Below, one piece after another: positions 1 through 60,225 of a stretch of DNA of 64,000 nucleotides (positions within the stretch are counted from its first letter, which is position 1; each line of letters opens with the position of its first letter). The translations under genes and the position numbers were made by a program. Location of the stretch: positions 806,001 to 870,000 of the forward strand of contig JANHCV010000001.1 in NCBI GenBank assembly GCA_025594325.1. Reading direction: 5' to 3'. Under the pieces are notes generated by a model, which searched no databases, was not told the origin of the DNA, and was given only the letters and a program-made list of their open reading frames with translations. The DNA is from Blastocladiella emersonii ATCC 22665. Taxonomy: Eukaryota; Fungi; Blastocladiomycota.

Positions 1-11
1 CGGGTGTTGCG

Positions 12-961
12 GTGCCGGCCGACGACTGGCCGCTGCTTCAGACCTTGACATCGGCGGTGCCAACGAACGTCTGTCGCGAGCAGCCAGTCTCGGCGCTCGA
101 ACACGCGTCGACGCATGGGGCACACCTGCACAACGTGTTGCTGTGTGGTTTCGGGGTCCATGCCCGCGATTTCATGCGCACCGTCGCCGACAACCGCGTC
201 GCCGGGTTTGGAAGTCGGTTCCTCGACGCCATGAAGACGCTTCTCGCGGCGTATCGTGGTCCCGATGCCCTTGCTCGACACGGTCTCGCCAACGGCGACG
301 ACCACGCGCTCGTCATCGTCCTGTGGGACGCCAACACGGTGTCGGCGACGGCCGACCAGATCGCGGCCATAGACGAGCCGTGGTTCGACACGCATGTGTG
401 CGCGAGTGCTGCCAAACAGGCCGAGGTACGCTCTTCCGAGGGCGAGCGTGACCTGCTCGACTGGGACTGACTTTGTACGACGCACGGTAGTGAAACGCCG
501 TCACGGGCAAGCGCAGCAGCCGCATCAAGTCGCTCACGGTGGACGCCGAGCCGTCGGCGGCGCTCAAGCACCGCGTTCTCGCGCACGTCGCGGCGGCGCT
601 CGGCTCGCCGCGCCCGCGGCCCGTGATCCTCATCTCGGACGGCACGATCTTCGACGGCGTCGAGGACACGGCGCGCCGCGAGCTCGGTCTGGACCGCCTG
701 GTGGCGGCGGCGGGGAACGGCAGCGATGCCGACCGGTGGGTCCTGCAGGTGCGCACGCCGTTGGCCGCGACCGTGATCATGTCGTGGGCCCAGATGTGCC
801 TCACGGACGGGCCCGACGAGGCCAAGGGCGAGTGGCGCGCGCGCGCCGCCGCGGCCGCGACCGAGGCATCGTCTCAGGCGTCCAAGAAGGCGACGTCCAA
901 GAAGGCGACGTCCAAGAAGGCGACGTCCAAGAAGGTGTTGTCGGACGGCAACCGTCACTGA
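12..961 (+). pseudogene. Family A (NYN/PIN-like) paralog, 3' part; exon 2 begins with TGA where paralogs have TGG
   Basis: VIVLWDANTV...PWFDTHV, then intron 426-490 (GTACGC...CTGAC...GGTAG), then RPVILISDGTIF...RWVLQVRTP. In-frame TGA at 491-493. Confidence 0.6.
880..935 (+). repeat. 15-bp coding tandem repeat (KKATS)n
   Basis: GACGTCCAAGAAGGC repeated about 3.5 times at the end of ORF 539..961. Confidence 0.85.
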
Positions 962-1127
962 ATGAAGAACTATTGTCCCCTTGTAAAGTCGCTCGCCTGA
1001 GTCGCAACGTCGTGAGCGCGGTGACGTAGTACGCTCATGCCGGCAGGCAGATGAAGCGGATCACGGTGGCCACGGCGACGGCGGCCGGGAGGGTTGGTGG
1101 TCCCACGCTGCTCCGTCGGCCGCGCCG

Positions 1128-1138
1128 GGTATAAAACG
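1128..1138 (+). promoter_or_regulatory. TATA box followed by a pyrimidine-rich leader
   Basis: GGTATAAAACG in a GC-rich context, followed by a CT-rich tract and an ATG. Confidence 0.45.
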
Positions 1139-6274: not shown

Positions 6275-7823
6275 ACCGCGACCGCTCCCTCGGTCACGTA
6301 CGGCATGCGCGCTTTCGAGGTGGCGACGCTCATCGCTCGCACCGGAGTCCCGGACTTTCCTCGGGTCCAGTCCACGCTCAACGAGACGTATGTCGCGTTT
6401 CTCGCTGCCGGCAACCCGCCGTCGCCCACGTTCTCGATCGACGCCAAGATGCACACCTGCCAGATGCTCCTGTACGCCGTGTCCGCGCACGGATGCGCTG
6501 ACGCGCGCATCACCGAGTTGTGCAAAGCGCGTAAGTCGCGCAGCTCGAAACGGTCGCGCGGCTCGACCTCGGGACCAGCGGTGGCGCCACCTGCTCCGGC
6601 ACCGGCACCGGCACCTACGCCGGCCGTGGGCACCGAGGCCGACGCGGTGGCGGCGGCAGAGGCCCAGCTGCGCGCAGCGGTTGCCGCGGCCGAGGCGTAC
6701 ATGGGCGACGCCGTCTCCGATTTCCCCGCATTCGGGATCCCCAACGACCCGATTGCCACTGCCGCTGAGATGGCGCAGCTGCAGCTGTTGCTGGCGAGGG
6801 CGCCGGCGAACCCGGCGTGGACCCACGGCGACGCGCTGCAGCTGCTGTCCACGATCAAGGGCATCCTCGCGATCATCACGGCGGGCACGCTGTTGAAGTC
6901 GGGCGCCGTGGTGCTCGCGTACTTTGTCGAATTGGCCCGCAACAACCTGCCGCTCCACGTGGCTGGCGTCGAGGTCGCTGCTCAGTACCACGTCCATCTC
7001 CAGCTGTACACGCGCGTCGCCGCCGACGACATGATGGCGTGGCACGCGCATGTGGCGACGGCGGCGCGGCTGTCGCCCAAGCAGCAGCTCCGCGAAGCGC
7101 TGCAGCACCGCTTCCAAGTCGACGCCGGCGCCGCGACGCGCGCGCTGTCCACGCTGAACGTCGACATGATTGGGCCCTCAATGCTGCGCGCCATGGTCCT
7201 CATGCTCGGGCTGTGCCGTGGGCTGGCCATCGCTCCGCAGCAGGTGCCAGCCCCCGCGCACGAGCGCGTCTCCGTCCGGTACCTGTGGGACGGAGACAAC
7301 GTGGTCCCAACCCGCGACGAGCTCGAGGCGCTCGACAAGCCGTGGTCCCAGGTGCACGTGTATGTGCTCACATCGGGCACGAGTCGGGTACGCGGCGTTC
7401 GACTGCGCAACAAAGAGGAACGACACTAACGCGTGCATGTGTGCGCGCGGGTAGTGGACCAACAAGCTCTCCAACCCGCGCCCCCGCAACCTGCTGCTCC
7501 ACGACCTCGGCCGCGACATCAAGGAGTCGGCCGACTACTACGCGCAGGCGCGGTTGGTGGCGAGCCGGGCCGAGCTGTGCGCGCGGACCCACCCGCTCTT
7601 TCTCGTACTCGTGTCGCACGACGGCTCTTTCGAGGTGATGGAGAGCCTCGCGCACGCCAACTTCGGGGTGGCGGGCGCGGGCGGCGGCGCGCTTGGGCCG
7701 GCGACTGAGTCGGGATGCTGGGTGGTGCGCGTGCGCACGCCGGCGCATGCAATTGCGCTCACTATGTGGATGGAAATGTGTCTGTCGAGCGGCGCCGGCG
7801 AGGGCTTCGGGTCGGCTGGGTAG
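5963..7823 (+). CDS. Family A (NYN/PIN-like) gene, apparently intact, 3 exons (5963-5986, 6107-7387, 7455-7823)
   Basis: Introns 5987-6106 (GTAAGG...CTGAC...TAG) and 7388-7454 (GTACGC...CTAAC...TAG) splice in frame. Motifs RYLWDGDNV...KPWSQVHVY and FLVLVSHDGSF...CWVVRVRTP. Confidence 0.75.
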
Positions 7824-8144
7824 GTCGGGGGCCGCCGCTGCAGACGCGGACGTCAACGTCGACGCGGGTGGGGCGTAAAGCGGTGGCGGATTCCAATAGA
7901 AAACTGCATTTGCATTGCACACGGAGACGGTGCGCGAGGGCGAGGGAGGGGAGGGGAGGAGACGCGACGGTCGTGCGCGCGTGACGTTGGTCCGGGAAGT
8001 GGGGACGCCACGCGGGCAGGCTCAGAGCAGATTCCGAGCGCCTCGGCGACGCGTCCGGCGTCGTGCATCGCTTCCCAGCCCCAACCGCTCTCGATACCCA
8101 ACATACCCGACTTGCACGCCGCTAGTAGCAAAAACCCCGTGCAA

Positions 8145-9885
8145 ATGCATTTGCTCACTCGTGGCGACGGCCCCGCCTCGCCGCCGCCGCCGCCTCGGCC
8201 GGGCCCGCGCGCCGCGGCTGCCCCGCTCCACCCAGCGGCAACCGACGCCGCGCCGGCCGTCACGGGCGCCGCTTCGAGTGCAGCCGCGCCAGCACCTGCT
8301 CCTGCTCCTGCTCTCGGCCGCACGCCCGCCCTGCCGCTCGCGCCGGGCCCGGCCCACGGCCCCGTCTCGACCACTCGGGCGACGGCCACCGTAAGCGCGT
8401 TGCCCCGCTCCAGCACGTACTTCCCCGCCCAGCAGCGCACCCAGCAGCGCGCTCAGCGCCTCGCCCAGCATCGCAGCCACCCGTACCGCCGGCCGAGACC
8501 CACGCCGTCGACTCGCGCCGCGACAGCAGGGCGTGCCGCACCGCCGCCCGCGCCGCCTGCACCCGCGCCGCCTGCGCCCGCGCCATCTGTGCCCGCGCCA
8601 TCTGTGCCCGCGCCATCTGTGCCCGCACCATCTGTGCCCGCGCCATCTGTGCCCGCGCCATCTGTGCCCTCGAACCCGCCGCCTCTGCCACCTGTGCCCT
8701 CGAACCTGCCGCCCGCGCCGCCAAGACCACAGCAGCCACCACACTTTGCCCTCCGTTTCCCATTGGAAACGCTCTGCATATCACGCTTTGCGTTCCGCTT
8801 CCGCCTCAAGGACGTGCCGCGCGGCGCCAGCGTCATCAAGCCGTTTCTGGATACCATGTACGTGCCTGATCGGCGGCCAGGTCCCGCCAACGTGGGCCTC
8901 CGTGGCGTGCTCGCTCCCTTACCCCCCGTCTCACACTGCCACCTGTAGCGACGACGTGATTCGCAAACTCGCACCCCAGGGTGCCACGTCCAACACCGCA
9001 CCGTCCCTCGACTGCATCCTGCTACGGACTCGGTGTTTTGTGCACCTCATGGACCTGCCGCGCACCCTTGTTGCCCCGACCGCGTTCTACGTCTACGTGA
9101 TCGAATCGGCGTGGAACGACTCGCTCGCGTACGTTCTGCTGGCTCCGCTGCCGCGCGGCGCCCGCTGGTGGTACATCATCACCATTGTGACGACGGACCC
9201 CACGTTTGCCGCCAAGCCCGCGATCGCTGCCCTCCTTGCGGCGTACGGCGACAACGCGCCGCATGACGGGCGCCACCGAGTTCGGGTTCGCGTCCAAGCG
9301 GCTGCAGTGAACGAGCTGCGCCCGCTGTCCGTGGACGGGCAAGCCGGGCGCGGTGAGGCGATCCGCGCACTCGAAGCGCTGCTGCCGCCCGCACCTCCGC
9401 TCGCGCGTGCACCCGCAATGGCAGCAGTGGCCGGTGCGACATGGCCGCCGCCGGCGCACCCGTACCGGGTTCGGTACCACCAGCAGCAGGCGCAGCAGCA
9501 GGCGCAGCAGCAGGCACAGCAGCAGCAGGTGCAGCGGCCCACCATCTACGCGCCGCGTGGCCTTTCCAGGAAACCGGCTAAGGAGTGGGTCCAGTACAAT
9601 GTCTCGCTCCAGATCCAGGTGGCGTCGCCGCTGCGCAAGGCGCGGGGCGGGAGTGGGGACGGTTCCACGTCGCCGTGGCCCGCGCCGCCAGCGCTGCTGC
9701 CTCTGCCGCCGCCGCCCGCAACGTCCCCCGTTCCCGTGACGCTGGTCGTGGTCCCGGCGCTGGTGGAGGGCATGGAGCATCTCACGCACCTCATGCACCT
9801 GCCCAGCGCTCAAGTGGTCCTGACCACGGAACGGAGCGGCGAGGCCATGGCGGTGGACGCCTTCCTGCGGACGTGGTTTGTTTGA
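8145..9885 (+). CDS. Family B hypothetical protein with a Pro-rich N-terminus, 2 exons (8145-8857, 8949-9885)
   Basis: Intron 8858-8948 (GTACGT...TAG) joins ORFs 8112..8948 and 8533..9885 in frame (550 codons); homologous to 1420-2352. Confidence 0.7.
8560..8700 (+). repeat. 15-bp coding tandem repeat (PAPSV)n
   Basis: GCCCGCGCCATCTGT repeated about 6 times. Confidence 0.9.
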
Positions 9886-10371
9886 CCCTCGGCCCAACTG
9901 ACGCCGCCACATGGGGTGCTCGCTCCCGACTCGTTCATTTTTACTTCCCATACACTAAACTGTTGATTTGCGCCCAAAGTTGCGGCTGGGGATCGAGTGC
10001 GAGTGCGAGGGAAGTGCGCCGGAGCAGAGGCACGGCCAAGGGAGGGGGTAGACGCGTCGCGTTTCAGGTCGGGCTCGTGACCAGCAAGAGAAGCCGCCTG
10101 CCCCCCGCACTCCGTCCCTCTCCGCCTACGCCGCCACACAATGAACAACATGGACAGCATCCTGGTATTTACTACGTGCATTACGACGGCCTCGATGATG
10201 CTTGGCGAGTGGAAGCCGGCTGCTTGCTCCGACGGCCAAGCGCGCAGGGAGGAAAGCAGCGGACGCAGGCACGGCGTGAACGTGGACTCACACGGACGCA
10301 TGCACTACGCACGCCATCACGTCGCACCCGCCGCGTCGTGCACATGACGCTGTGTCCCGCCTTTCCCGTAG

Positions 10372-12114
10372 TTCCGTGCCAGCGGGGGCAGCGTTGGAGG
10401 TGCGCTCGTCCGGTTCCGCACACAGGACGGCGTGACAGTCCTCGCCCCGCGGCGGATCGCCCAGAAGTCGGGGCTGCTCAAGGAAATTCTCAACGGCTGC
10501 ACCGAGGACATGGAGGTGCCCCTGCCGAAGGTGCCCTCGAGCCGCGCGCTCCTCCGCATGGTCGAGTAGGTCAAACATCACCTCAACAACGAGATGCCCC
10601 AGCGGCCCGGGCCCATTCCAGGTGACCAGGGCGAGCGCGCGACGCGCGTCTCGGACTGGGACGTCAACTTCTTTGCGCAGTTATCGCACTCCGCCGTCGC
10701 TGAGCTCGTCTGCGTGTCCCACTACCTCGACATTGAGCCCCTGTTCGACCTCAGTTGCAAGATGCTCGCCTGCGTGATCCACGCGTGCGGACTCGAGGCC
10801 GAGCAAATCGCCAATACGCCCCCGGCAATCGAGTCTTTGTCCTGGGTGCAACAAACCAGCGTCGACTGCCTTCAGCAGCTTGCCATCGATCCAGTGCAGT
10901 CGGCCAACCTTGGCGTGCTTGCGTGGGGCAAGCTTTTCGCCGAGACTCTCAGCAGCACCCTGCCGCCAGCGGCTGGCGCAATTCTGAATCGGTACTGGAC
11001 TTCATTGGCGGTCAAGCTCGCTCATGACCCCGAGTTCCGCCTTAACGTAGTCATCGCAGGTGCGCATCGCTTGCTGGGTCCGCGGCAGAATAGGGCGCAA
11101 TGCTAACGAACCTTGGACCACGTTCGGCTCTGGCTGTACGTGCACGCTGCTCATACTATAGCGTTCCGGTACGCGTTTGCCATTTGCAACGGCTGCGCAC
11201 CCGAGACCACGCAGCGAGTCATTCGCTTTGCCCGCGAGCGCACTTTGCCCATTGACGAGCTTGATGCAACCCTCAAACGTTGCTTCCCGACCGAGCTCTG
11301 CTGCGACCAGTGCTCGACCCATGCATGTCTTCTGCGTGCATTTGGTGGCCCTGCCCCCGAATCCGACCCGCGCGACGTTCTCAAAATCATGCTCTCGGTC
11401 GTGTCCCGCTCTGCTGGAGCCGTAAACGACGTCATGCGGAGCGCCGCGTATGCAATGCTAGCACATCCAACGTTTACATGGGTCATCCTATCCCTCCTTT
11501 GCTCGGAGCACCGCCATGCAACGCTATCATCCATTACCCAACACTCCGAATGCGCCGCGCTTCTTCTCAGCGCCTTGATACTTGCGCTTCTAGACCTCAA
11601 CAGCTTGCGCGGGATTGACGCTGGCGGGCGCTACGGCGTTCTCCCAAAACCGAGCTCGCCCACATTTAGTATGGATCCCGCCTACTCGACTCTCCTTACT
11701 TGGATTGAGTCCACTTGCCGTCTCAAGGACGAGGTGGCGCTTTGGGCCCACGCAGTCCCACAGATTCTCCGTAGCTTTCCAAATGTCTTGGACAACATCT
11801 CGACCGACGCCAAGCGCGCGATCGGTAACTTCTTTCGGACTCAAAATGGCCAGTCTGAATTTATGATCGCGTCCAAGCGCATGTCGGGCAAGATCGCAAC
11901 GGAAGCAATGCTCAAATACGGTGCCGTCAACGCGAGCGGCGTTGGCGCGAGTCACGCAGCGCTTGCCGTGGTTATGGACATGTGGTCTGCCGACCTTGAC
12001 GCTTTGGTGCGCATTATTTCTCACGAGCTGCCAGGCGAAACAGACCAGTGGTGTAAGCATCTCGAGGAGGTCGCGCTTGCCCATGGTATGGAATCGGTTG
12101 ACTTTGGGTATTAA
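10372..12114 (+). pseudogene. SKP1-like domain fused to an uncharacterised C-terminal region; one nonsense codon
   Basis: VRFRTQDG...SGLLKEIL...VPLPKV...MVE*VKHH...SDWDVNF...VSHYLDIEPLFDLSCKMLA matches the SKP1 POZ and dimerisation motifs. TAG at 10567 where Trp is expected. Intron 11060-11161 joins ORF 11113..12114 in frame. Confidence 0.75.
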
Positions 12115-34000: not shown

Positions 34001-35062
34001 CAAGATGGCCCACGTTGTCGCCATGCCCGGCGTTCCGACAGCCGAGGGCATGGCCAACGCCGTGATTGAGCACGTTGTCTGGCATCACGGGCTGCCCGAC
34101 AAGATCGTCTTGGACCGCGGGACCCAGTTTACGTCGCAGTACTGGGCGCGACTGTGCAAGACGCTTGGGATCAAGCGCAAGCTGTCGACGGCGTTCCACC
34201 CGCAGACCGATGGCAGACCGAGCGCATCAACAAGTCGTTTGAGCAGTATCTGCGCCTGTACCTCGACCGCCACCAGGACTCGTGGCGCTCAATGCTGCTC
34301 GTCGCCGAGATCGCCTACAACAACGTGCAGCACGAGTCGATGGGCAAGACGCCGTTCGAGGCCAACTACAGGTTTGGGCCCAAGTTCACGGACCCGCCGC
34401 CATTGGCCGAGGGTATTGGCGAGGGCGCCAACAAGGTTGTCAACTTTGCGCAACGTATTGGCCAGGTCCAGACCAAAATGCGCCAGCACCTCAAGCGCGC
34501 ACGGGCTCAACAGAAGCAGTACGCCGACCAACGCCGCCGCAAGGCGCCGCAGTACCACGTCGACCAGATGGTCCTGCTCTCGGCCAAGAACCTGCGCCGT
34601 GTCGAGTTGTCAAACAAGCTCGCGCCGCTCTACCTGGGTCCGTTCCGCGTCAAGCGCGTCATTGGCGTGACCAACGTCAAGCTTGAGTTGCCCGAGGGCA
34701 TGGAGCGCGTCCACCCCGTCTTCCACGTCTCGCTTGTCAAGCCATTTGTTGCGTTGGACGAGCGTCGGTTCCCCAGTCGTCACGTACTGCCGCCTGACCC
34801 CATCATCCGCAACGACGAGGAGTACTACTTCGTCGAGCAGATCCTTGACTCCAAGTACATCGGGTCCAGCCGCAACAAGACCGTGTGGTACCTCGTCCAC
34901 TGGCGCGGGTACCCAATCGACAAGGCGACGTGGCAAGACGACTCAGACGACATGCGCCGCCTCGAGGCCGTCGCGCAGTTCTACGCGGCGCACCCCGACA
35001 AACCTCGACCGCCGCGACGGGCCGCGGGCGGGAGGGGGAGGTGGTGTCACGGCGCAGCGTGA
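31000..35062 (+). pseudogene. pol: Pol: protease, RT, RNase H, integrase, chromodomain; inactivated
   Basis: INSGA (catalytic D to N), YLDD, TDAS, GHPG/CxxC, YFVEQILDS...YLVHWRGY...TW. Two in-frame TGA between protease and RT, and a 1-bp deletion near 34215. Confidence 0.93.
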
Positions 35063-35261
35063 CAGGTGTGGCGCGTTTCGTTCACGCGCGGCGTGGCGCG
35101 ACTTGCCGATCCAGGATTCCCCGCTCCCCGTTCACTGTTGTCCCCATTTCAGCGTGGAGTGCGGTGCAGCCGGCTCTCGCTCTCCACGGAACAAGATCAT
35201 TTATCACGCGAATAATTGCGCCTCGTGTTCATCAACCCGCCCCTGGTCCCTCGTCTTTACA
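35045..35261 (+). repeat. 3' LTR (217 bp)
   Basis: Preceded by the purine tract GGGCGGGAGGGGGAGG; followed by the CTAAA TSD. Confidence 0.95.
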
Positions 35262-35795
35262 CTAAATTGTGCAGACCTGCCAGAAACATGTTTCGCGAAT
35301 AAACAGCAGCGTAGATCGGGACGCACAGATTACGGGATGCGCTGCATGAAATCAAAAATGGGTCCATGTCACGCTGGGTGTGGTCGGAGCGGGGCGGGGC
35401 GCGATGTGGAATTTCGACCACCGCAAAATTCACTTCTAGCTTGACCGTAGTGTGCCCTCAGCCATGGAAAACACGAATAGCGAAGTTTGGATACGCCGGA
35501 CGGGGTTACAGCGTCGTAAAGTATGGGGCCGCCAGCTGGTTTGGGCCAAGTGACACTGACAGATTCATTCAACCCTCCACGGTGTACATCAGACCCTCCC
35601 AAATGCATTGCAGAGACTTAGAATTTGTTTCATTCATGTGCGGGACCTGTACCGGGGTGACCAGCGCGTGCTTGAGGTGGCGGGGCGCGCCAAGACCAGC
35701 GTCATGTGACCTTGGCTTGAGTTGAAGCGTACTCGACTGGGAGGAAGCTCGGCACAATGGACGTGCGATCTTGGCGGAGATGAAGATCGAAGCGG

Positions 35796-36345: not shown

Positions 36346-38950
36346 CTAGTTTTTGCGCTGCTTCTTGGACTGCTGCTGCTGCTGCTTTCTCATGTCCGCC
36401 GCGCGCTTCTGCTTGCAGTACCTTATGCTAGCCAGCCGCTTGCGCTCCCTCCGCTCGGCATCCTTCTCTCCTGCGATCTTGCGGTGCTCCTTCACTGCTT
36501 GGCAAAACAGCTCAGAGACTCGCGCGTCATGCTGCTCGACAGTTTGGCCATGAACAAACGCCTCGCTGGTCAGCTTGTCAAGCGCTTGTAGCTGCAAGTC
36601 CTTGGCCACTGCGCGCGGATCCGGCACCATGACTTCAAAGACACTTTCCGGGATCGGCTTGAGGATCCACAGGAACGCCCAGTTGCGAAGCCGCAACAGC
36701 GCAACGTACAGCGATGCGCCCTTGATCAAACCCAACGCGCCAGACGGGCACGGGTCCATCAGGATGATGGCGTTCTTGGTCAAACCCTGGACCCCATGCA
36801 CAGTCATCGCGAAGGCGGGAACGATTGGGAACTGCACGATCTGCACCTTCTTGTGGCCTTTGTAGTGCTTGTGCGTCTTGAAGTCCTTGACCATCGTTGC
36901 GCAAATCGCATTCGCCTCGAGGTCCTTGTTGTTGTTGCGCTCGCGCGACGTCAGGCCGTTCTCCTTGTAGAGAAAGCTGTCCGAGTGCATGGCGAGCGGA
37001 ACGTCTGGCCAATCTGCCGGCATACCCGGGAAGCGAGGGCCGGACGGCGCGTCGGCAGGTCGATCCACACGGTGGGCGGCTCGCGCGATGGGTGGAACAT
37101 GTGGTTGGCCGTCTCGGTGAACGTCGTGCCAGGGAACCAGTCGATGTGGTGCACGACGCCGATGGCGCCGTTCGCGCAGCCCTTGGCCACGCACTGGTTG
37201 AGCTTGACGCGCACCTCTATGCCGACGAAGGCCTCGAGAATGGCGAGCAAACCCCCAGTGACCAAGTCGGGCTCCTTGGCGATGCGCCACAGGTCCGTTT
37301 CGCCAATGCCACTCTTGACGGTTACGCCGTTCTGCACCCGCTCGCGCGTGATGTTGGCCTTGATCTGAAACACGACGCGATCTGGGTCCGCTGCGGCGAG
37401 CCGCGTGTACAGCAGGTTGAAGGCGTGGCGCGTCAGGTTGTCGGGCGCGATGACCATGAGTCCGGGCGTTTCAAGGATCTTCTTGATCTCGTTCTTGCCC
37501 TGCTCCATGTTCAGCTGCTGCAGTCGAGCGGTCGTGCGCAAGTCGAGTAGGTTGCGCAGCTCGACGGAGGCCTTTTCGAGGCGGAACGCGTCCAAACATC
37601 TGCCCCAAGTCGGGTCGTCGACGAACCGGTTGCTGTGCACAAGGCGGACGACGCGTTGCGCGCGCCAGTACGCGAGCTGGCCCACGTGCTTCCATTTTGC
37701 GCCCGTTGTATCGTACGCGAGCAGCCGCTCGTAGAACGAGTCCTGCGCGTCGTCAAGCACGTTGGGCAGCTGGAACAGGGGCGTTCCGGTCACAGGAGGA
37801 AGCTGCAAATGATCGCCAGCGAGCATGACAATGCAGCCGCCAAACAGCTCGTCGCACCGACGCAGCGCGCGGAGGCTCGCGTCGATACGTCCGAGCAGCA
37901 CCGCGTTGCACATGGAGAACTCGTCGATGATCACAGCGTGGCGTCCCAGCCACGCGCTAGCAACGGCCGAGTCGGTGCGCATGCGCCCGATGTCAGGGCT
38001 GAGCCTGTCACCCTTGAGCGCGAGCTGGAACGCTGCGTGAATCGTCGCGCCGCCAATGTTGGCCGCCGCGATGCCGGTCATGGCCATGACCATGAGCGAG
38101 GTTTCGCGATTCCAGGACGCGAGAAAGTACCGGATGCCGTCAACGACGCGCAACTTGCCCATGCCGCCCAAGCCGGTGAGGAAGATGGGCGAGCGATCCT
38201 TGCTCATGGGCGGGAGCGATGCAATGGCCGGCGCGTGCAGTTGGCCGCGGCCCGACGCGTGCGCGTCAGTGCTGCAAGACGCGACCGCCTCAGCGACACT
38301 GTTGTCGCCGCCGATGAACGTGGCGATGAGCGGCATGAGGAAGAGGACGAACGCGTGGTGCTGCTCCTTGTTGAGGTTGAACTTGAGCGACACCTGCGCC
38401 AGGGTGGCGTAGGCGGGCGTGTGCTTGGTGCGCTGCTCCTCCTTGGTCCATTTGTCGCCGCGCGTCGAGTAGGCAAAGTTGCTGATCGAGTCCGCGGCCT
38501 TGATGACAAGAAACCAGTTTCGCGCTGCAGGCGATTCCAAGGACCGCGCTGCAAAGGTGGTGCGCCACACGTCAATCGCGAGCGCGGCTGGTGGATCTGC
38601 CACGTCATCAACGACGTTTTCTGGGTCGTCGCCGATCTGCGGTCCAACGGCTTGATCAGCGGAAGCTGCTGCGCCAACGAGCAGCGACTGCCCGCCCTGC
38701 GGTGCGACGGGGGCAGCTGCTGCTGCGGCGGCGGGCGCCGTTGCAGTCGCCGAAGACTTGTGGTGCCGCGCCATGAACTTTTTCAGCGTATTCACCGAGA
38801 CGCGCGTTGGGAGCGTTGGCGTTGGCACCGGCGCGTTGATGTTGAACTGCCGCACAGGAGGCAGCCGCAGGTTGGCGGTCAGGTCTGCAGCAGCACCAGG
38901 GATCAGCGTAGAGTTGCCGCCAATCAGAACCGCCCATGGCAGTGCGCGGT
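36346..38950 (-). pseudogene. Pif1-family helicase of a Helitron-like element, one frameshift, degenerate Walker A
   Basis: LNKEQHHAF, FLTGLGGMGKL, IIDEFSM, GDHLQLPPV, FPIVPAFAMTVHGVQG, YVALLRLR. Confidence 0.9.
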
Positions 38951-39637
38951 ATTGTGGGGGGAAATCCGGTTCCAGCATCGCAAATTTCGCGAATTTTTGT
39001 TGACGGGCGGTACCGGTTTTGAAAAAATTTGGAGCCTTGACGGACGGTTTTTTGGAGGCCCGGTATTTCTCAGCTGTAGCTTTAGCGAAGCTGAGTTTCT
39101 GTGGGAGCAATTGAAACCTATCAGGCACATCAACCTTGCTCTTGTGGTCACATGAGTGGCTCAGTGACCGTTTTCGATTTTCGTCGCGCGACGAGTTCCG
39201 TTGTTTTTCGCTTTCACTTCATTCCGACCCCTGCAACGTAAATCTGGATTGTGCTTTGCCTAGTCCCCAACAGTTCGAGGCTGTTCACTTCGAGGGGAGC
39301 GAGGTCCTGTGCAGCGGTTCCCGTGCGCAGGCGTGACGAGACGGACCTCGCTCGAAACTGACTGTTCAGCATCACGTGACCTGACATCAATCCTGTCTGG
39401 CTGCATTTTCGCGCCCTCGGAAGCTCTCCCACTCCACGCCCGCTCGCTCGCGCTTGCCGCTGCTCTTCAACGCTCTTTGAGACCTCCTGTGCTGACCAGC
39501 TCTTTACCCGCCACTCCTACCCCATGCAGCGCTTAATACTTCGCGATCCGGCGTCTGCCTGGCCGCCATGCGGCCACATATAAAGGCGCGCGGGCCGCCG
39601 CTGACAGTCCTTGCTCTCCTCCACCACTCGCAACACC

Positions 39638-44104: not shown

Positions 44105-45360
44105 TCAGGAGCCAAGTACTAGGTAGTGGTTGCCTGCGCCAGACGTTGCGGTCAAGCGGCCATCGTGTTTTGCGCGTCGCACCGAGTTCTGCGCCGTGAT
44201 GAGGGCCTGGTCGCTCCAGTCGTTGAGCTGGCCTGGGTGCTGGCCCAGTACGACGTCTGCTCGCCGCGAGCCGAGGTACCTGATCACGCGCTGCGAGACG
44301 ATGCAGTTGCGCAGGTCCTGGAGCACGTTGAGGAAGCTCGCGTCGCCCGACTGCCGCATCTGCTGCACAAGGAAGAAGACCGAGTCAAAGGCGAGCCACT
44401 GATCGCGACCAATGTTGGCGTCAGCTCGAGTTCTGCTGACCGCTGGCCGCTCCTTGCGCTTGGACGCGCGCTTCTTCTGCTGCTGCTGCTGAGGCTCGCC
44501 GTCGACCTGCATCCAGTCGCCATCATGAGCTGCATCCGCCTTGGGTTCGGGTGCGCGTTCGACCAGCTGCTCGGATGGAACCGTGAGCGAGCGGGCCATG
44601 ACGGGCTCAAACTGGAAAAAGTCGCCAAACGCGAGGACGTGCAGGCCGCCAAACGGACGATGGTCGCGGCTCGGGTATAGCGCGTCGAAGCGCAAGTGCA
44701 TTGCGGCGAACAGCTCGGCGCTGACCATGGAGATCTCGTCGAGGAGGACAAACTTGACGGGGCGGAAAGAGGCCTCGAGCTCGGCCTTGGCTTTGTCGCT
44801 CATCGGCTTGGTCGCCAAAATGGCGGTACCAATACCGCACATGGCGTGGATCTTGGAGCCGCCAATTAGCGCCGTGGCGACGCCGGTTGGCACCCAGATC
44901 TTGAGCCATGAGCCGCAGCCCTTGGCGACGAACATGTCGCGGATCGAGTTGATGACGCGACACTTGCCCATGCCCGCCTTGTTGTGGACCAGCATGAGGA
45001 GCTGCTTGACGTCCGCATCGCCGCGCTTGATGGCATTGAGCGTCGACTCGACGTGCTCAACGACGCGGCGCTGCTCAAAATTGAGCCCGTGAAGGTACGG
45101 AGCGAGATGCTCCTGCTGCACAAGCTGCACCTGGACGGCTGGCGGTGCGACACCATTGTCTGCTTGAACGAGTCGAGCGCGAGATGGCTCCGCCGAGCGT
45201 TCTGCGGCAAACTAACGGGAAAGCTTACCAGGCGACGTGTTCACGTAGTCGCGGAAGTTGTTGATTTACCATGGTTGGTTGCTGCCCTGCTGGAGCGTGT
45301 TCTTGAAGAGATCGGGTGTCTGCGACCGCGTCTCGTTGTGGACCGGCATCACCTCGTTGA
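44105..45360 (-). pseudogene. Pif1-family helicase N-terminal half (third, divergent copy), truncated
   Basis: LNFEQRRVV, KAGMGKC, PTGVATALIGG, LLDEISMV, FGGLHVLAFGDFFQFEPV, LVQQMRQSGD. Confidence 0.88.
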
Positions 45361-46039: not shown

Positions 46040-49000
46040 GTCGTTGGGCGAGCGGGTCGATATGCGTGCAGTCGGACGACGCGGCGCGGATGCGGTCGCG
46101 CAGGCGGTCCTCGGCGGGATGCGCCAGTGGAAGAAGGCGCGGGCGCAAGTTCACTCGAGCACGGCGCGCACCGCGCCCTTGGCCTTCATGCGCCCGGGCG
46201 TGTCGTGCAGGTCGGTGAATTTGAGCGCGGCCAGGTGGTACACGAGTAGCAGCGACTCCTGGCACGACTGGAGCTGCGCCTGCAGCGCGACGCACATCGC
46301 TGCGGGGTTCTCGTCGTCCAAGTCGTACTTCTCGAGCGCCGCGTCGCCGGCCGCTTTGCTGCTGTCCGCAACAGCGGCGCCAGCATTCGTGGGCGCGAGC
46401 TTGGACTTCCAGTGGCGGCAGGCGTCGTTAAGGCGGTCAACCGTGGCGAGCAGCTGAGGCTTGTGGTGCTTGATCTCGGCCATGCCCCCGGGCTCGAGGA
46501 CGCCGCCGCGGGCAGTCGCGTCCGCGAACATCTCCATGCCGCCGTTCTGGTGGACCGACGGGTCGAGGACGACCCAGGCGCTGCCGCGGAGCTCGCCGTG
46601 CGGGACAATGTAGACGAAGACGGGCCGCGGGTGCGTGCGCAGGGCGTTGACAATGTAGCTGCTGAACTTGAGGATGGCGTCGAGCATGTCGCGCCGGCCG
46701 CCCTAGAGCCCGCGCCAGTTGGCGAAGATGAGCAGCGGGAGACCCTCGCGGCCGAGGTCGCGGACCGCCTGCGCCGTCTTGTACGCGGACGCGGGCGTCC
46801 ACACGCTGGGCGGCTCGACGACCGTCTGCTCGGCCGAGTTGGGGTTCGCCGGGTGCGCGGGGATCACAGTCTCGACAGCACGCGTCTTGACGGCGATCGC
46901 GCCGACGGGGACACCGCCGAGACGGCCGCGGCCGACCACGACCGTCTTGCTCCAGCCGTCCGCGGTCTCCATCCACGAGCCGCGGTGGAAGAACCCGCCA
47001 ACCCACGCGCCCAACTCGTCGCGGTGACCATGCAGCATGTGGCGCGGGTGGTACGGCAACTTGGTCGGCGCGAACCTGATGTCGCGGTCAGCCTCATCAA
47101 ACTGGAACGCGGCCGCGTCGGCGGCGGCGCCGTCTGCGACCGAGGAAGCCGTGGTTGAGAAGGCCGAGGCCGGGTGCGCGGCCGTGACTGTCGCCGGGTT
47201 GCTGATGGGCGCCTGGAGGATCGGGAGCGGCGCGCCGCGGTGGGCGGGGACGCAGCTGAGCCACTGGATGATCTGGGCGACGCCGTGCAGCGGGTCGATG
47301 CACGTGAGGTGCGAGATACCGTTGCGGTGCATGATCTGGACGCCGCCAAGCTGCAGGTTGGACGTGTACACGTCGCGGCCGAGCACCTTGTTGAGCGCCG
47401 CGGCGCCCGTGAGGATGATGAGCTGGCCGCACTGGATTGCGCGCTGGCCGAGGCGCACGAGGTACGCGCCAATGCCGATGGAACGGCACGCGACGAGCGT
47501 GGCGGTGAAGATCTCGTCGTACGCGGCCGACGTCTCGCCAGCGATCAGGCCTGAGCCCATGAGGTTCTCAACGCCGAGCCCGTCCTTGATCCCGATCACG
47601 TCGACGATGCGCATGTGCGTCTCGCCCGTGACCTTGTCGACAACGCGCTCAACCGTGACCAAGTCGCGCAGGCGGTCGTAGTCTTTGGGCGTCAGGTATA
47701 GGTACTTGTACTCGAGGGCCGGGTCGCGCGGGTCAACCCACGCGCGATGCGGTACGCGGCGAGGACCTCGTTGGCGAGCCCAATACGCGCGTCCAAGGAG
47801 GGCGGACACGTAGATGCGCGGGACGCCAAGCTCGGGGGCGAGCTTGGACGCGGCGGCGGACACGTTGTCCTCCTGCGGTCCAACTGAGCTGATGGCGAAG
47901 GTGATATCGTTGGCGATCAGGACCATGGACCAGCCGCGCGGGCACTCAGGCGACTCCATCTCAACGAGCCACGCGACCACGGCGCACATGTTGGGGCCCA
48001 TGGGCCGGGTGACTTTGCGCATGGTGCCGTCCTCGCCGATGGCAAGCTCAACAGCGTCGACGAGGTTGCCGGCGGGCCGCACAAGGTGCGGGTACCGCGC
48101 CCACTGCTGGGCGAGGGCCTTGTGGACAAGGTAGAGGTAGTCGTAGTCGTAGACGTAGGTGGTGCCCATGACGTGCGCGCGGTGCCGCTTGGGCTGCACC
48201 TTCTCCTTGTTTGGGTACGCCCAGTCAGCGGGCGCGAGATGGTGCTCGCCCTTGCCCAACGCAGACTACGTGCCCTTGGTGTGCAGCACGACGCAGCCGC
48301 GGTTGTCCTTGACCTCGTGGTACCACTTGGCCTTGATGACGCCAGACACGTTTGACACAAAGAACCGGTACGTCGTGGTCTTGGCGCTGGCGGTCGGCGG
48401 GTGGCACAGGAACCAGATCTCGGCGCTCGTGATGCGCAGCTTCCACAGCCACTTGCCGTGGCGCATCAAGAGACCCGGCGAACGAGTCCTGCACCTTGTC
48501 AGGCGACACGGGCAGCCCGGGCAGGAAGTTGAGGAACAGGGGGTTGCAATCAGTGTTGGGGAACCGCTCGGCCGCGAGCTTGAGCGCGTTGAGCGTGTCG
48601 GTGGGGATCCCGTCAACCTCAGCCGTCAGGTATTTGACTGTTGACCGCTGGCCAGCGCCGGGCGTGAGGCGGCTGGGGCGCACGAGCGCGCGGACAAAGA
48701 AGCGCGAGTCGAGCGTGTTATCCTTGCCAACGGCGTGGTAGACGTGGATGGTGCGGTTGGTGAGCGTGGCGACGGGCATGAGGTTGAAGCGCGCGGTGCG
48801 GTACAGCTCGAGCTGGAACGCGTGCAACGGCTCGATGATGCGGATCGTCGCGTCCTCGCCAAACGCGAGCCGCTTGCGGAACGTGAAGTACCGCGGGTAC
48901 TGGCCCTTGCGGTACGCGACCATGGTGACGCGGCGGATCCCGCGCAACCGGAGCGCCGCCGTTGATGACGCGAGCAGCGACCCAAACAGTGACAAGAGCG

Positions 49001-52000
49001 CTGTGTCGGCATCGGCGTTGGCCGCGGGCACCTTGACCGCGACGTTGAGCGCGTGCCACGGCTCGGTGCGGCCGAGCTTCTTGGCCTTGACCTGTGGGAA
49101 CAGCGCGAGGATCGCGGGCAGGTGCTGCTGGAGCTTGGCGGCGTTGCGGACAGCGGCCATGATGCCGACGCGGATGGGCCCAAGGTCGCCGCGCTTGATC
49201 ATGGGCGTCATGTCCAAGACCGACGCCGTGCGCGGGTTGTCGTAGGCGGACCCGCCAGCGGTGGCAGCTGACGCGTTGCCAGTCCCGAGGTTGTGGGCGG
49301 GGAACTGGAAGTGCCACTCAACGAGCGGGACGGGAAACGCGTCCTGCTTCTTTACGGCGTGGACGTGGTGCATGTTGTAGGGGCGGCGGACGTACATGTC
49401 GAGGGCGATGAGGCGGTCGACGGCGGGCACGTCGTGCTTGTAGAAGAGCGAGGGGAGCATGTCAAAGATGGAGAAGAGGGCGAGTTGATCAGGTTCATGG
49501 CCTCCTCGTGCGCGGCAGGTGACGCCTCGGGCAGCGCCGCGACGGCGCGCGTCACGTCACAGAACTGGCGGTACCGCTCGTCAAACCTGGGCAGCTGCAT
49601 TGCGATCAGCAGTGCGCGAGCGCAGAGCTGGACCGACGGGCGCCCTTGGCCTTGGCCGTGACTGAAATGGCAGCAGCGCCGCCGAGCTTGGCGAGCTGGT
49701 GCAGCGCCGTGTACAGCTTCTGGACGTTGGCCGAGCGCGCGAGGACCGAGCGCTGGACAGCGGCGACGAGGTCGAGAACCGCGCCGATCGCCGTGCACTT
49801 CCACGCGGCGCGCGACCGCAAGAAGCACGTCCAGCAGAGAGCGGCTTGGGCTCCGTGCGGGTGCGGAGCTTGAGCATTGTCTTCTTGGTGTGCACCGCGT
49901 CGCCGCCCGACATGAATGGCGACTCGGACGCGTGGAACCAGCGGATCAGGTGGTTCAGCTCGGCCACAGCGTGCGCGTTGGCGCCCGCCTCATACTTGCA
50001 GACGACCTCAAGGATTGGCGCGGTGGCGGCCTGGTTGGGGACCGTGGCAAGGAGCGCGAGCAGCTCGGCGGCTGGAAATGGCGTGTTTTCTGTCGACGCG
50101 GGCGAGATGAGGTCAAGCAGCTTGCCCTCAAGCCCGTGGGGCAGCCGGTTGTGGTAGCTGCTGAGGACCTGCGCTGTGTGGAGGACCGGCAGCTTGGGGC
50201 GGTGGATCACGTCAAGGCACGCCAATAGGAGCGAGGCCACAGGATGCGCCTGCTCGGACCCGTTGACGGCCCGGTTGAGCACCTGCTACAAGTCAAGGTA
50301 CCGCTGGTGCGCCTTGTTGGCCTAGCCAACGACAACGGCTGAGGCTGGGGACGCGGCAGTTGCGGCCAACAGAAGCGACGCTGACAACGTCGAGCGGGCG
50401 ATTGAAGACGGGAACGGCTTAACGCACAATTCTGCGATCTTGACCTGCGAAATGTCGTCAAGCTCGAGGACGGCGAGGATCTCGCCAGTGGCAATGGGCG
50501 AGCCGGGCTGCTTGGGGCCAGCGCATAGGTACCCGCGTTGGTGGCAAAGAGCAGCATGATCATCTTCATGACCTCAATCTCAGCAAACGCCTGGCCGGTG
50601 TCAACGTGGCCTGCGTTGGGGATGATCCAGTGCACGAGCGTGCCGGGCGACAGCGAGCGCAGCTGTGTTGGGTCCGTCCCCTGCGTGAAGACCATGGTGC
50701 GCCCGTTGATGGGCAGCTGGGTGCCGGCCACATTGGCGGACGCATACGTGACGTGCGACATCTCTGCGTAGGTGACGAGGACGCCGCTGTCAGGCAGGGC
50801 GTGGGCGCAGACAACGATGTGCAAGTCGTTGAGGCGCAGGACAAGCAGATCGCGCGTGGCAAGGGTCACGGCAATGTTGTAGCGCACGCCGTCGAGGATG
50901 AAGGAGGTTGAGAACTGGTCCTTGATGCCGGCGAGCGTGGGCACCTGGCCCTTGTCAAGCGACTTGAGGAACTGGGCCTTCTGGTCCTCGGCAGCGAGGA
51001 AGGCCATGGTGGCGGCGCCCGTGACGACTGAGACCCAGCGGTTGGGCCGCTCGGCGGTGAGCTTCTGCTAGATGCGGACGTTGAACCACTCGGTTGAGAA
51101 GTGGTTGTCGGCGAACTGGTCCGTCTCGAGCCAGGTGATCAGGTACTCGACGGTTGTGCGGAAGTCGCCGCAGATGCGCAGCTCCTTGGGCGTCATGATC
51201 ATGTTGCAGCGCAACAAGTGGCGGTCGTGCCCGTACGCAAACACGTGGCCAAACTGCAAGTCGGCAGATTTGTGCAGCCCGCAGTTGGCCAACGCGGAAA
51301 AGTAGCCCCGCACGTCTGTTGAGGAGCAGAAGTTGAGCTCAACAAGGCGGCCGCCCGACGGCTTGAACCCGGCGTCTGGGTTCTCGGCCGTGATGCGGCA
51401 CGCAATGACGTGGCCCGTTGGCGCCGGCATGCAATGGATAGTGAACAACTGCGGGTGGTCAAAATGGAAGTTGATCTCGGACGTGGTATGCAGCTGCAGC
51501 CCATACAGCATGCGCACGTGCGGGATCCGGTACAGCAGGATGCCCATGGTGACCTGCAGCTGCACGGCTGGGATGTTGACACCAGACACCATCTTGGTGG
51601 TTGGGTGCTCAACCTGCAGGTGCGGGTTGAGCTCAAGGAATTAGTCCTTTTGCTGGCCACGTCGTAGAGGAACTTGACAGTGCCAGCGTTGACGTAGCCG
51701 ACAAGCTTGGCGAGGCAGACGGCCGACACCTCCATATCCTCAAAGATGGCCAGGTTGGCAACGGTGACAGGGGCCTCCTCGATGATCCTCTGGTGGCGGC
51801 GCTGAACCGAGCAGTCGCAGCCAAACAGCGAGATGGCATTGCCGTACGCGTCAGCAAGGATCTGGACCTCGAGGTGGCGCGCGTTGGACGCCAGGCGCAT
51901 GAAGAAGATGGGCGAGCCCTGCACCTCGGCGGCGACCTGCACAAACGCGGCGCAGAACTGCAACGGGTCCGTGACCTTGCAGATGCCCTTGCCACCGCCT

Positions 52001-52162
52001 CCCTTGGACGCCTTGATCTGTTTGTGTTTGGTTTGGGGTGGTGCAAGTGTGAGTGAGCGAGCTGATCAATCGCACGTCAAAGAAAGCAGAATCAACGTAC
52101 CGTGAGAGGGTAGCCCACGCGGTCCAGCAACTGCAATGGCCTGTTTGACGTTGGTGACGCAT
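46040..52162 (-). pseudogene. ACC1: Acetyl-CoA carboxylase pseudogene (part of BC, BCCP, central region, CT), 5'-truncated at the inverted-repeat junction
   Basis: [28 protein letters not shown] (biotin motif), ANDITF, GETSAAY, ANWRG, DLHDTPGRMKAKG; multiple stops and frameshifts. Confidence 0.96.
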
Positions 52163-53384
52163 CAGCAGGTTGCGGGGGCGCGGGTTGGAGAGCTTGTTGG
52201 TCCACTACCCGCGCGCACACATGCACGCGTTAGTGTCGTTCCTCTTTGTTGCGCAGTCGAACGCCGCGTACCCGACTCGTGCCCGATGTGAGCACATACA
52301 CGTGCACCTGGGACCACGGCTTGTCGAGCGCCTCGAGCTCGTCGCGGGTTGGGACCACGTTGTCTCCGTCCCACAGGTACCGGACGGAGACGCGCTCGTG
52401 CGCGGGGGCTGGCACCTGCTGCGGAGCGATGGCCAGCCCACGGCACAGCCCGAGCATGAGGACCATGGCGCGCAGCATTGAGGGCCCAATCATGTCGACG
52501 TTCAGCGTGGACAGCGCGCGCGTCGCGGCGCCGGCGTCGACTTGGAAGCGGTGCTGCAGCGCTTCGCGGAGCTGCTGCTTGGGCGACAGCCGCGCCGCCG
52601 TCGCCACATGCGCGTGCCACGCCATCATGTCGTCGGCGGCGACGCGCGTGTACAGCTGGAGATGGACGTGGTACTGAGCAGCGACCTCGACGCCAGCCAC
52701 GTGGAGCGGCAGGTTGTTGCGGGCCAATTCGACAAAGTACGCGAGCACCACGGCGCCCGACTTCAACAGCGTGCCCGCCGTGATGATCGCGAGGATGCCC
52801 TTGATCGTGGACAGCAGCTGCAGCGCGTCGCCGTGGGTCCACGCCGGGTTCGCCGGCGCCCTCGCCAGCAACAGCTGCAGCTGCGCCATCTCAGCGGCAG
52901 TGGCAATCGGGTCGTTGGGGATCCCGAATGCGGGGAAATCGGAGACGGCGTCGCCCATGTACGCCTCGGCCGCGGCAACCGCTGCGCGCAGCTGGGCCTC
53001 TGCCGCCGCCACCGCGTCGGCCTCGGTGCCCACGGCCGGCGTAGGTGCCGGTGCCGGTGCCGGAGCAGGTGGCGCCACCGCTGGTCCCGAGGTCGAGCCG
53101 CGCGACCGTTTCGAGCTGCGCGACTTACGCGCTTTGCACAACTCGGTGATGCGCGCGTCAGCGCATCCGTGCGCGGACACGGCGTACAGGAGCATCTGGC
53201 AGGTGTGCATCTTGGCGTCGATCGAGAACGTGGGCGACGGCGGGTTGCCGGCAGCGAGAAACGCGACATACGTCTCGTTGAGCGTGGACTGGACCCGAGG
53301 AAAGTCCGGGACTCCGGTGCGAGCGATGAGCGTCGCCACCTCGAAAGCGCGCATGCCGTACGTGACCGAGGGAGCGGTCGCGGT

Positions 53385-53427
<43 letters not shown>

Positions 53428-53696
53428 AGCTCGTCGGGGTCGAGGGTGTACTTGAGGATGGGCGCTGCCGCGCCGAGGTTGGCGTTGGTCGCGGCCGGGA
53501 CCACCGCCAGCGGCCCGCCACCCGGCTGCTGGTCCGGCAGCTCCTGCGTCGGCTACGGGGTCGGCGCAGCGTCAGACAGTGGCATCGTGATGGTTTTCGC
53601 GGGTCCCTCCCGCGGGACACGCGCGTGGGCGGCGGCTGCGTTCGCTGCGGGCCCGAGACGGCATGTCCTTACGTTTTGCGTGGTTTTCGGATCCAT
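52163..53696 (-). pseudogene. Duplicate of the 5963..7823 family A gene, truncated 42 bp into exon 3
   Basis: Mirror copy; after RNLL it reads into ACC-derived sequence in a non-ACC frame. Confidence 0.8.
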
Positions 53697-58000: not shown

Positions 58001-58697
58001 CGGCGAACCCCGCGTCAAACGTGTACACCGTCGCGTCGAAGCGGCACGGCGCGTCGGGCGACGGCAGGGTGCGCAGCGTCGCGGCGAGCGCGTCGGTTCA
58101 CGCCGCGTCGAGGACGTGCACGGGGATGACGATCTCGGGGTCCGTGAACTGGACGAGCCCTCGTAGTTTCTCTAGCACGGGCCGCGTCACCGGCACGCGG
58201 TCCGGAGCGCTAGCCGGCGCCGCGGCGATGGCGGACAGGAGCTAGATGGGGTCGAGGCCGGCCTCGACACTAGACAAGGGGGGTAGCCCGTCAGCTAGAG
58301 ATTCCAGAGAGCGATTGTGCACGCCTCGAGGACGAGACGCACGCGGCGGCAACGAACTCCTCGCGCGTCAAGCACTGGGGCGCCGGCGGGCAGTTGAAGG
58401 TGGTGGTGTTGCCCGCGGCGGTTGAGAGCACGGTGGTTGATGCATAGCAGGTAGTGAGTGTTCTTGATAGAAGAGATCGTCGTGGGAGAGAGGGAGAGCA
58501 GGAGGGCGGGAGCGGGAACGCGTTTTATACCCGGCGCGGCCGACGGAGCAGCGTGGGACCACCAACCCTCCCGGCCGCCGTCGCCGTGGCCACCGTGATC
58601 CGCTTCATCTGCCTGCCGGCATGAGCGTACTACGTCACCGCGCTCACGACGTTGCGACTCAGGCGAGCGACTTTACAAGGGGACAATAGTTCTTCAT

Positions 58698-60225
58698 TCA
58701 GTGACGGTTGCCGTCCGACAACACCTTCTTGGACGTCGCCTTCTTGGACGTCGCCTTCTTGGACGTCGCCTTCTTGGACGCCTGAGACGATGCCTCGGTC
58801 GCGGCCGCGGCGGCGCGCGCGCGCCACTCGCCCTTGGCCTCGTCGGGCCCGTCCGTGAGGCACATCTGGGCCCACGACATGATCACGGTCGCGGCCAACG
58901 GCGTGCGCACCTGCAGGACCCACCGGTCGGCATCGCTGCCGTTCCCCGCCGCCGCCACCAGGCGGTCCAGACCGAGCTCGCGGCGCGCCGTGTCCTCGAC
59001 GCCGTCGAAGATCGTGCCGTCCGAGATGAGGATCACGGGCCGCGGGCGCGGCGAGCCGAGCGCCGCCGCGACGTGCGCGAGAACGCGGTGCTTGAGCGCC
59101 GCCGACGGCTCGGCGTCCACCGTGAGCGACTTGATGCGGCTGCTGCGCTTGCCCGTGACGGCGTTTCACTACCGTGCGTCGTACAAAGTCAGTCCCAGTC
59201 GAGCAGGTCACGCTCGCCCTCGGAAGAGCGTACCTCGGCCTGTTTGGCAGCACTCGCGCACACATGCGTGTCGAACCACGGCTCGTCTATGGCCGCGATC
59301 TGGTCGGCCGTCGCCGACACCGTGTTGGCGTCCCACAGGACGATGACGAGCGCGTGGTCGTCGCCGTTGGCGAGACCGTGTCGAGCAAGGGCATCGGGAC
59401 CACGATACGCCGCGAGAAGCGTCTTCATGGCGTCGAGGAACCGACTTCCAAACCCGGCGACGCGGTTGTCGGCGACGGTGCGCATGAAATCGCGGGCATG
59501 GACCCCGAAACCACACAGCAACACGTTGTGCAGGTGTGCCCCATGCGTCGACGCGTGTTCGAGCGCCGAGACTGGCTGCTCGCGACAGACGTTCGTTGGC
59601 ACCGCCGATGTCAAGGTCTGAAGCAGCGGCCAGTCGTCGGCCGGCACCGCAACACCCGCCGCGTGAAGGTGCATGTTCTTGCGCCCGAGCAAAGTGAGAA
59701 AGGCACAATGAGCGGGCGTCACGTCCGGGTCCTGCGGCTGCTGCGACTCCTCCTCCTCGGCCACCTCGTTGTCGTTGCCCTTGCGCTCGACGAGGATGCT
59801 ACCGGCGCCCGCGTCACCCGCACCGCGGCCGCGGCCGCGGCCGCTGTCGCCGTTGGCCTGCTGCCGCTCGATCTTGTCAATGAAGAGCTCCACCTGGGAC
59901 TACATGAAGCGCGCGTCCTCGCGGCGCAACGGGGGGTTTTCGGCGCCGTCACCATCAGCTGGCGCAAATGGAGCACCACTTGCGGCGCGTTATCGAGGTT
60001 GAGCACATCGGTCTCGGACACGGCCTTGAGCGCGAGCTGTGCGCTGCCCGGCGGCGGCGCGGCCACGTGCGGATTCTCCGTCCCGCCCGACAGCGACGCG
60101 GCGTACATCATGTGGTTTGCAGCTGCGTAGGCGATATACTGGCAACCGTTTACCGAATCGCCAACGGGTATCGACCCTTCAGCGGGGAGTGCAGCGCGAA
60201 TGTGGTCCAGCGTCTGCTGAGCCAT
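58698..60225 (-). pseudogene. Full extent of the family A paralog whose 3' part appears at 12..961
   Basis: N-terminal LRQLMVTAPKTP and VELFIDKIER match MRHLMTTAPGDP and MSLIFDQIQR of 61147..62435; a stop/frameshift near 59900 and TGA at the start of exon 2. Confidence 0.65.

Follow-up and report, generated by a model that had tools for sequence, protein, structure and literature searches.

A near-perfect large inverted duplication in a fast-evolving gene array of Blastocladiella emersonii

Introduction

In Candida albicans, long inverted repeats are substrates of non-allelic homologous recombination and give rise to inversions, copy-number change and loss of heterozygosity (PMC6591007); those found at inversion breakpoints are separated by spacers of 3.1-94.3 kb (median 34.6 kb; Todd et al., 2019, PMC6591007). 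On the human Y chromosome, the arms of palindrome P6 are kept >99.9% identical by gene conversion across a spacer of ~46 kb (Hallast et al., 2013, PMC3723533). Here we analyse a structure of this general kind in Blastocladiella emersonii ATCC 22665, located in a stretch of 64,000 nt (contig JANHCV010000001.1, positions 806,001 to 870,000 of the forward strand; referred to below as the window, to which all coordinates apply). It consists of two inverted arms of at least 7.5 kb, which carry members of two orphan gene families and enclose a core of 44.7 kb, filled for the most part with transposon debris and ending in a pseudogene of acetyl-CoA carboxylase (ACC).

The Blastocladiella locus shares with the C. 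albicans repeats (PMC6591007) the layout of fungal intrachromosomal inverted copies that contain several open reading frames (ORFs) together with intergenic DNA, are >99% identical and lie tens of kb apart. It differs from them in the length of its arms (at least 7.5 kb versus 1.7-3.2 kb in the C. albicans examples), in belonging to a zoosporic fungus, and in being known here from its sequence, without an observed rearrangement. As in P6, the inverted arms are >99.9% identical and carry members of gene families, and the spacer is of nearly the same size. The arms of P6, however, exceed 100 kb and are longer than their spacer, whereas those of Blastocladiella amount to about one sixth of theirs, and the setting in this fungus is, as far as is known, no non-recombining sex chromosome; conversion in P6 was moreover demonstrated by phylogeny and outgroups, whereas for Blastocladiella we infer it.

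Two further systems resemble the locus in part. Yeast fold-back events and origin-dependent inverted-repeat amplification (ODIRA) also produce inverted duplications of chromosomal segments through errors of replication or repair, but they arise at very short inverted repeats, whose spacers measure tens of bases, and leave copies head to head around a tiny centre (PMC6591007), whereas the two copies described here lie 44.7 kb apart and one of them ends in a blunt join to unrelated DNA. Gene capture by Helitrons likewise leaves host gene fragments cut in mid-exon and abutted on one strand beside Helitron sequences; here, in contrast, the block is not bounded by Helitron termini or by a Rep domain, the piece is unusually long (~8 kb + 6 kb) and the neighbouring Helitron genes are decayed. 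Taken by itself, the locus is probably an ordinary large inverted duplication, such as have often been described on fungal and sex chromosomes.

Results

Positions 1-7496 of the window (the left arm, + strand) are the reverse complement of positions 52163-59658 (the right arm, - strand), with no indel and a single mismatch over 7496 nt. Direct comparison and a repeat finder agree on this result, and together they reproduce what an earlier note on this DNA, called here the original prediction, had claimed: near-perfect inverted arms with one difference and no indel. The left arm begins at the first base of the window, by whose start it is cut, so that 7496 nt is a lower bound on the length of the arms; the repeat finder gives 44,666 nt for the spacer between them. 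The length and identity of the repeat make a chance origin impossible, and the locus has the layout of a large inverted segmental duplication, with two multi-kilobase inverted copies of near-complete identity on one molecule. The lone difference is an A at position 4029 facing a mirrored G (C at 55630), that is GACAAC versus GACGAC, a CpG transition. The inner boundary of the repeat is sharp, only 6 of 18 bases being alike between 7497-7514 and 52162-52145. Besides the arms, self-blastn of the window returned no long repeat, just old transposon pieces and a paralogous stretch of 72% identity at 61166-61735. The arms have a GC content of 69%, versus 62-64% in the flanks, and the observed/expected ratio of CpG exceeds 1 throughout, which deprives it of any use as an age marker. 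Searches of the window for tRNAs and against Rfam gave no matches.

On its outer side, the right arm probably extends further than its visible mirror. An ORF that runs outward from it (59192-59899, - strand) stays open across position 59658, and the probable continuation (59659..60225, - strand) would comprise the first exon of the gene A1 described below, with its ATG at 60225. The full arm is thus probably about 8.1-8.7 kb long, its left outer side lying outside the window.

Within the arms lies part of a tandem array formed by members of two orphan gene families, A and B, recognised from profiles of GC content at third codon positions (GC3) and from ORF comparisons. Family A has four members in the window. 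ORF comparison places three of them in the left arm on the + strand, namely A1 (from upstream of the window to 958, visible as 3-958), A2 (~3469-3849) and A3 (5963-7823), and the fourth, A_out (61150-62468, - strand), forms a tandem with A1 in the right outer flank. A_out is a diverged paralogue: at the DNA level its region is 72% identical to 58792-59343 (blastn, 61166-61735), and at the protein level 37-47%. Family B is represented by pieces at 1562-2134 and 8395-9882, which match each other with E = 5e-7. A3 (+ strand) is a complete family A gene, with its ATG at 5963, a GT donor 8 codons on and a large exon at 6107-7426; its last exon spans 7455-7823, and the arm ends within this exon at position 7496. 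A feature of family A genes is a very short last intron, with a branch-point-like motif, ACTAAC or ACTGAC, ~25 nt before the AG (7380-7454, 440-493).

Compared with its paralogue (61578-62468), A1 shows a frame change at an A4C6 run and a read-through TAG, near 59900-59960 (mirror position ~-240 to -300), lesions that make it a probable pseudogene within the arm. Since A1 looks damaged, purifying selection is not the explanation of the identity of the arms. The C-terminus of A1 also contains SKKAT repeats, which its paralogues lack and which are encoded by a perfect 15-nt tandem repeat of 3.8 copies at 879-935 and 58724-58780.

None of the arm-gene ORFs had a match in Pfam at E values up to 10, profile searches of the PDB with them found nothing, and the ESM atlas was blank for them. 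Word searches of a collection of 5.8 billion proteins with two of the arm ORFs also gave no match, although the window's own proteins were likewise not returned by these searches. The label of NYN/PIN-like nucleases that had earlier been given to the arm genes thus finds no support from Pfam or PDB profiles, in searches made with unspliced ORFs in which the putative domain is split by an intron. The array evolves fast, and its two families are species-specific.

The two inner ends of the arms are not equivalent. At the left, the part of A3 beyond position 7496 can be aligned to the C-terminal exons of both A1 and A_out; 21 columns of the alignment are invariant and include the motifs RWV..VRTP and W..MCL. 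The right copy of A3 (52163..53696, - strand) keeps 14 codons of exon 3 and then adjoins the ACC pseudogene on the same strand; its C-terminal domain is gone, and its reading frame runs on through ~100 out-of-frame codons of the ACC pseudogene to a stop. The presence of the conserved C-terminus of A3 on the left and its loss on the right mark the left side as the original arrangement and the right side as a derived, truncated copy. On this comparison of sequences, the view that the left arm is the original, and the right arm a shortened derivative of it fused to unrelated DNA, is supported, and it is the polarity that had been proposed earlier from the intact run of A3 through position 7496 and the break in exon 3 of its right copy.

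No ACC 5' remnant was present among 10 ORFs examined in the right outer flank, and neither blastn nor blastp found a mirror of 7497-13000 in the rest of the core. The founding event looks like a non-homologous join, rather than an insertion with target-site duplication or the later truncation of a longer arm. Insertion of the arm into the ACC pseudogene was considered and rejected, there being no ACC 5' remnant beyond the arm and no target-site duplication.

Three public runs (X1, X2 and X3), which derive from one sample and one study, were available as contigs assembled at k=31 and were compared with positions 50000-55999 of the window. The depth attached to such contigs is one figure per contig and not a copy number, and the contigs drop minor paths. 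The novel junction at which the ACC pseudogene meets the right arm (52162..52163), where the original prediction had proposed to look for spanning reads, is bridged by an X1 contig (51924-55999, 0 mismatch) and by an X3 contig (51924-52479), and is entered from the ACC side in X2. In this last run there is a branch exactly at 52163: the contig that comes from the ACC side ends 30 nt into the arm, and the 30 loose letters of the other contig are the exact reverse complement of 7497-7526, from which it follows that the left junction is present too. Contigs of the arm have a depth of ~260 in X2 versus ~105 for unique flank (~2.5x), and read-derived contigs cover the right arm in all three runs. 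The single-nucleotide polymorphism (SNP) at 55630 has the left-arm allele in X2 and the right-arm allele in X1 and X3. Since both junctions and both alleles occur in contigs derived from reads, the duplication is very probably no invention of the assembler.

The published B. emersonii assembly comprises 21 contigs and was made with LJA from HiFi reads (mean 10.5 kb, ~186x), followed by purge_dups and Pilon (PMC9730499); the polishing with Pilon used 65-nt Illumina reads at ~64x, from DNA that had been prepared separately (PMC9730499). HiFi reads of this mean length and depth should include many that span an arm of ~8 kb. Illumina reads of 65 nt at ~64x imply a 31-mer depth of ~34, which matches that of X1, and the year and depth of the runs suggest HiFi reads for X2 and Illumina reads for X1.

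Two further observations were made in the arm contigs. A hexamer array of GGGCGC at 53364-53433 is 24 nt shorter in the X1 contig, as a result either of k-mer collapse or of a real length variant. In all three runs, a contig of approximately single-copy depth joins sequence resembling that which ends at 54063 to sequence resembling that which starts at 52625, with 11 other letters between them, an arrangement that suggests another paralogous locus of the A/B array at a different place in the genome.

The core was described in the original prediction as made of transposons and a pseudogene, a description borne out by the ACC pseudogene, Helitron helicase fragments, Ty3/gypsy element and Harbinger transposase that we found. 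Its left end (7497..12114, + strand) is gene-like, with the end of A3, the family B paralogue at 8395-9885 and more ORFs with coding-like GC3; no Pfam match was obtained for the ORFs of 7497-12114. From ~12.5 to 46 kb, the core is transposon debris. It includes a PIF/Harbinger-type DDE transposase (25542..26967, - strand), which has DDE_Tnp_4 matches and is split over two ORFs, and a Ty3/gypsy long terminal repeat (LTR) retrotransposon (29467..35263, + strand) with gag (zinc knuckle) and pol (reverse transcriptase, RNase H, integrase). The LTRs of the latter (29467-29706 and 35024-35263) are 92% identical over 240 nt by the repeat finder and 95.4% over 219 nt by blastn, and this identity of 92-95% makes the element far older than the divergence of the arms. 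Domain matches further identify two fragments of Helitron-type PIF1 helicase, at 36951..39125 and 44108..45130, both on the - strand; no Rep domain was found between the second of these and the ACC pseudogene.

The ACC copy (46154..52162, - strand) was recognised from the order of its Pfam domains and from its reading frames. Along the - strand it has CPSase_L_D2, Biotin_carb_C, ACCA_BT, Biotin_lipoyl, ACC_central and Carboxyl_trans, and it is 5'-truncated: neither the biotin carboxylase N domain nor the beginning of the ATP-grasp domain is present. With a frameshift at ~51640-51646 (profile positions 170 to 173) and an in-frame stop at 46703-46705, this copy, judged by its reading frames, is a pseudogene. 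Short contigs at 50862-50953 and 51857-51953, seen in all three runs, have 2-3x the local depth and are 2-3 letters off the window. They are the sole cover at 50909/50920 in the three runs and at 51902-51909 in X1 and X3, while X2 also has the letters of the window at 51902-51909. Such deviating contigs indicate that ACC-derived sequence exists in more than one other near-identical genomic copy.

The transposon-rich part of the core contains two other repeats. At 27073-27233 lies a degenerate tandem array with an 11-nt unit that contains AAACCT, a telomere-like motif reported for B. emersonii (PMC9730499). An inverted pair of a short hairpin-bearing element, 85% identical, occupies 22463-22555 and 36147-36222; the second copy stands ~0.7 kb downstream of a Helitron helicase fragment, a position that fits Helitron 3' ends.

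Discussion

Our analysis indicates that this locus is probably a real inverted segmental duplication in the fast-evolving A/B array, with the left arm as the original, the right arm as a truncated copy, and no active role for the structure as a whole. A block of at least 7.5 kb, containing A1, B1, A2, B2 and most of A3, would have been copied in reverse orientation to a place 44.7 kb away. The copy would have broken off part-way through exon 3 of A3 and been linked, through a non-homologous join, to an ACC pseudogene that was already truncated, at the edge of a transposon graveyard.

The arm identity of 99.99% may reflect either a very recent copy or gene conversion from arm to arm, and we lean slightly to the latter, because the junction partner, ACC, is decayed and because the arms are more GC-rich than their flanks. 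A spacer of ~46 kb is no bar to conversion, as the example of P6 shows (PMC3723533). Homologous exchange between the arms could also invert the core, which is mechanistically possible as in the comparable repeats of C. albicans (PMC6591007). The arms being identical, such an inversion would leave the junctions as they were, together with the pair of intact and truncated A3 genes, so that nothing would be switched, and the flip could not be detected by short reads, as the junctions after inversion would be the same. The structure is in all probability passive, neither a switch nor a transposable unit.

Several observations weigh against a duplication of this description. The outer end of the arms lies beyond the window, and all three runs are probably the source data of the assembly itself. 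In X1 and X3, the arm contig passes position 52163 without a branch, none of the six loose ends of X1 being located at this position, and no contig displays the left junction. The depth of the arm in these two runs equals that of single-copy neighbours (35 versus 39-46 in X1, ~5 versus ~5 in X3), and this pattern is the expectation for an arm present in single copy. X2 carries G, C and T at 52219, 52247 and 55630, where the window, X1 and X3 carry A, T and C; given these letters, the true number of differences between the arms is uncertain, from 0 to 3, and the single SNP between them could be a Pilon correction that was applied to one arm and not to the other. The published sequence of the duplicated arms may thus have been altered by short-read polishing.

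The disagreement between the runs has three possible causes, namely GC bias of the short-read libraries, a difference between DNA preparations or haplotypes, and half-applied polishing. The GC content is 70-72% in the left flank and 53-60% on the ACC side, and a putative Illumina GC bias might account for the pattern of X1 and X3. There is a small, though real, chance that DNA preparations or haplotypes of the strain differ because the duplication happened, or was last homogenised, very recently.

These same data bear on the most serious alternative, in which the polarity is reversed: the duplicate would be old and diverged, the right arm and its ACC junction stable, and the left locus, in the DNA that went into long-read sequencing, recently overwritten by full-length conversion or break-induced copying up to the limit of homology at position 7496, or else the structure would be hemizygous, with preparations or haplotypes that differ. 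We consider this unlikely. It would account for the presence of the right junction alone in X1 and X3, unbranched at 52163 and at single-copy-like depth, next to both junctions and a 2.5x depth in X2, and for the three arm sites at which the letters of X2 differ. The ACC flank of X2, at ~105, is also near half of 186x, and its arms, at ~260, come to ~1.4x, values that fit one dose of the core and three of the arm. The DNAs for Illumina and PacBio sequencing were in addition prepared separately, and purge_dups removed haplotigs (PMC9730499). Contig depth, however, is unsuited to copy number and minor paths are dropped, and the types of the runs (Illumina versus HiFi) are deduced from year and depth. 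A hemizygous core at 39-46 is at odds with the expected Illumina 31-mer depth of ~34, short of a strong GC bias. Two strongly diverged copies at a distance of 45 kb are unlikely to undergo conversion, and the final assembly, polished with Illumina reads, has arms that differ at one site only.

That the structure is an artefact of assembly or polishing, with a single-copy arm placed twice or a core joined by mistake, seems quite improbable. The single-copy-like depth and lack of a branch in X1 and X3 would be explained in this way, but both inner junctions occur in k-mer contigs, on which the assembler had no influence, all three runs contain the novel one, and the depth of the arm in X2 is 2.5x that of its flank. 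Fold-back reads due to a missed adapter are excluded by the 44.7-kb unique spacer.

It is more improbable still that the locus is a giant mobile element, with the arms as terminal inverted repeats of a 60-kb transposon, or with the right arm and the ACC fragment as host DNA picked up by a Helitron. Both A3 and ACC are broken in mid-exon and lie head to tail on one strand, an arrangement that resembles Helitron gene-capture patchworks; Helitron helicase fragments stand 1 kb and 7 kb downstream of ACC on the same strand, and the 2-3x local depth of ACC-derived k-mers indicates that pieces of ACC are multi-copy. Against this, the left arm end runs seamlessly into the rest of A3, so that the arms have no symmetric termini, and no terminal-repeat ends or Helitron ends were found. 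The junction and the right outer flank share one 8-mer, at chance level, and no target-site duplication was seen, the true outer ends lying beyond the window. No Rep domain adjoins ACC, and the genes of the Helitrons and of the other transposons survive as old fragments, whereas the arm is pristine. In Pfam searches no transposase was associated with the arms, and those of the core are parts of distinct, decayed elements of the Harbinger, Ty3 and Helitron types. We therefore do not retain the giant mobile unit suggested in the original prediction, in view of the one-sided continuation of the exon, the failure to find a target-site duplication and a core that holds only separate decayed elements. 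Helitron capture in particular was rejected, as no Helitron termini were found and no Rep domain lies between ACC and the helicase fragment.

A programmed invertible segment, flipped by its arms as a switch, is barely credible: long identical inverted repeats do surround a discrete segment, but no tyrosine or serine recombinase, nor any other recombinase family, was found among 70 window ORFs searched against Pfam, exchange within identical arms restores the same junctions and the same A3 genes, and the core is mostly dead transposon sequence.

Read as an inverted segmental duplication with the left arm as its source, the locus draws attention to a region in which a published assembly may have been changed by the short-read polishing of duplicated arms. 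It provides a clean example in which a truncated arm, fused to unrelated DNA, lets the founding direction be read, and its wide spacer bears on the distance at which arms can stay identical. If the disagreement between the runs is real, the rate of duplication or conversion would be measurable in a laboratory strain. Were it truly to reflect a difference between preparations or haplotypes, the formation of a palindrome arm, or a full-length conversion, would have been caught in the act in a culturable fungus.

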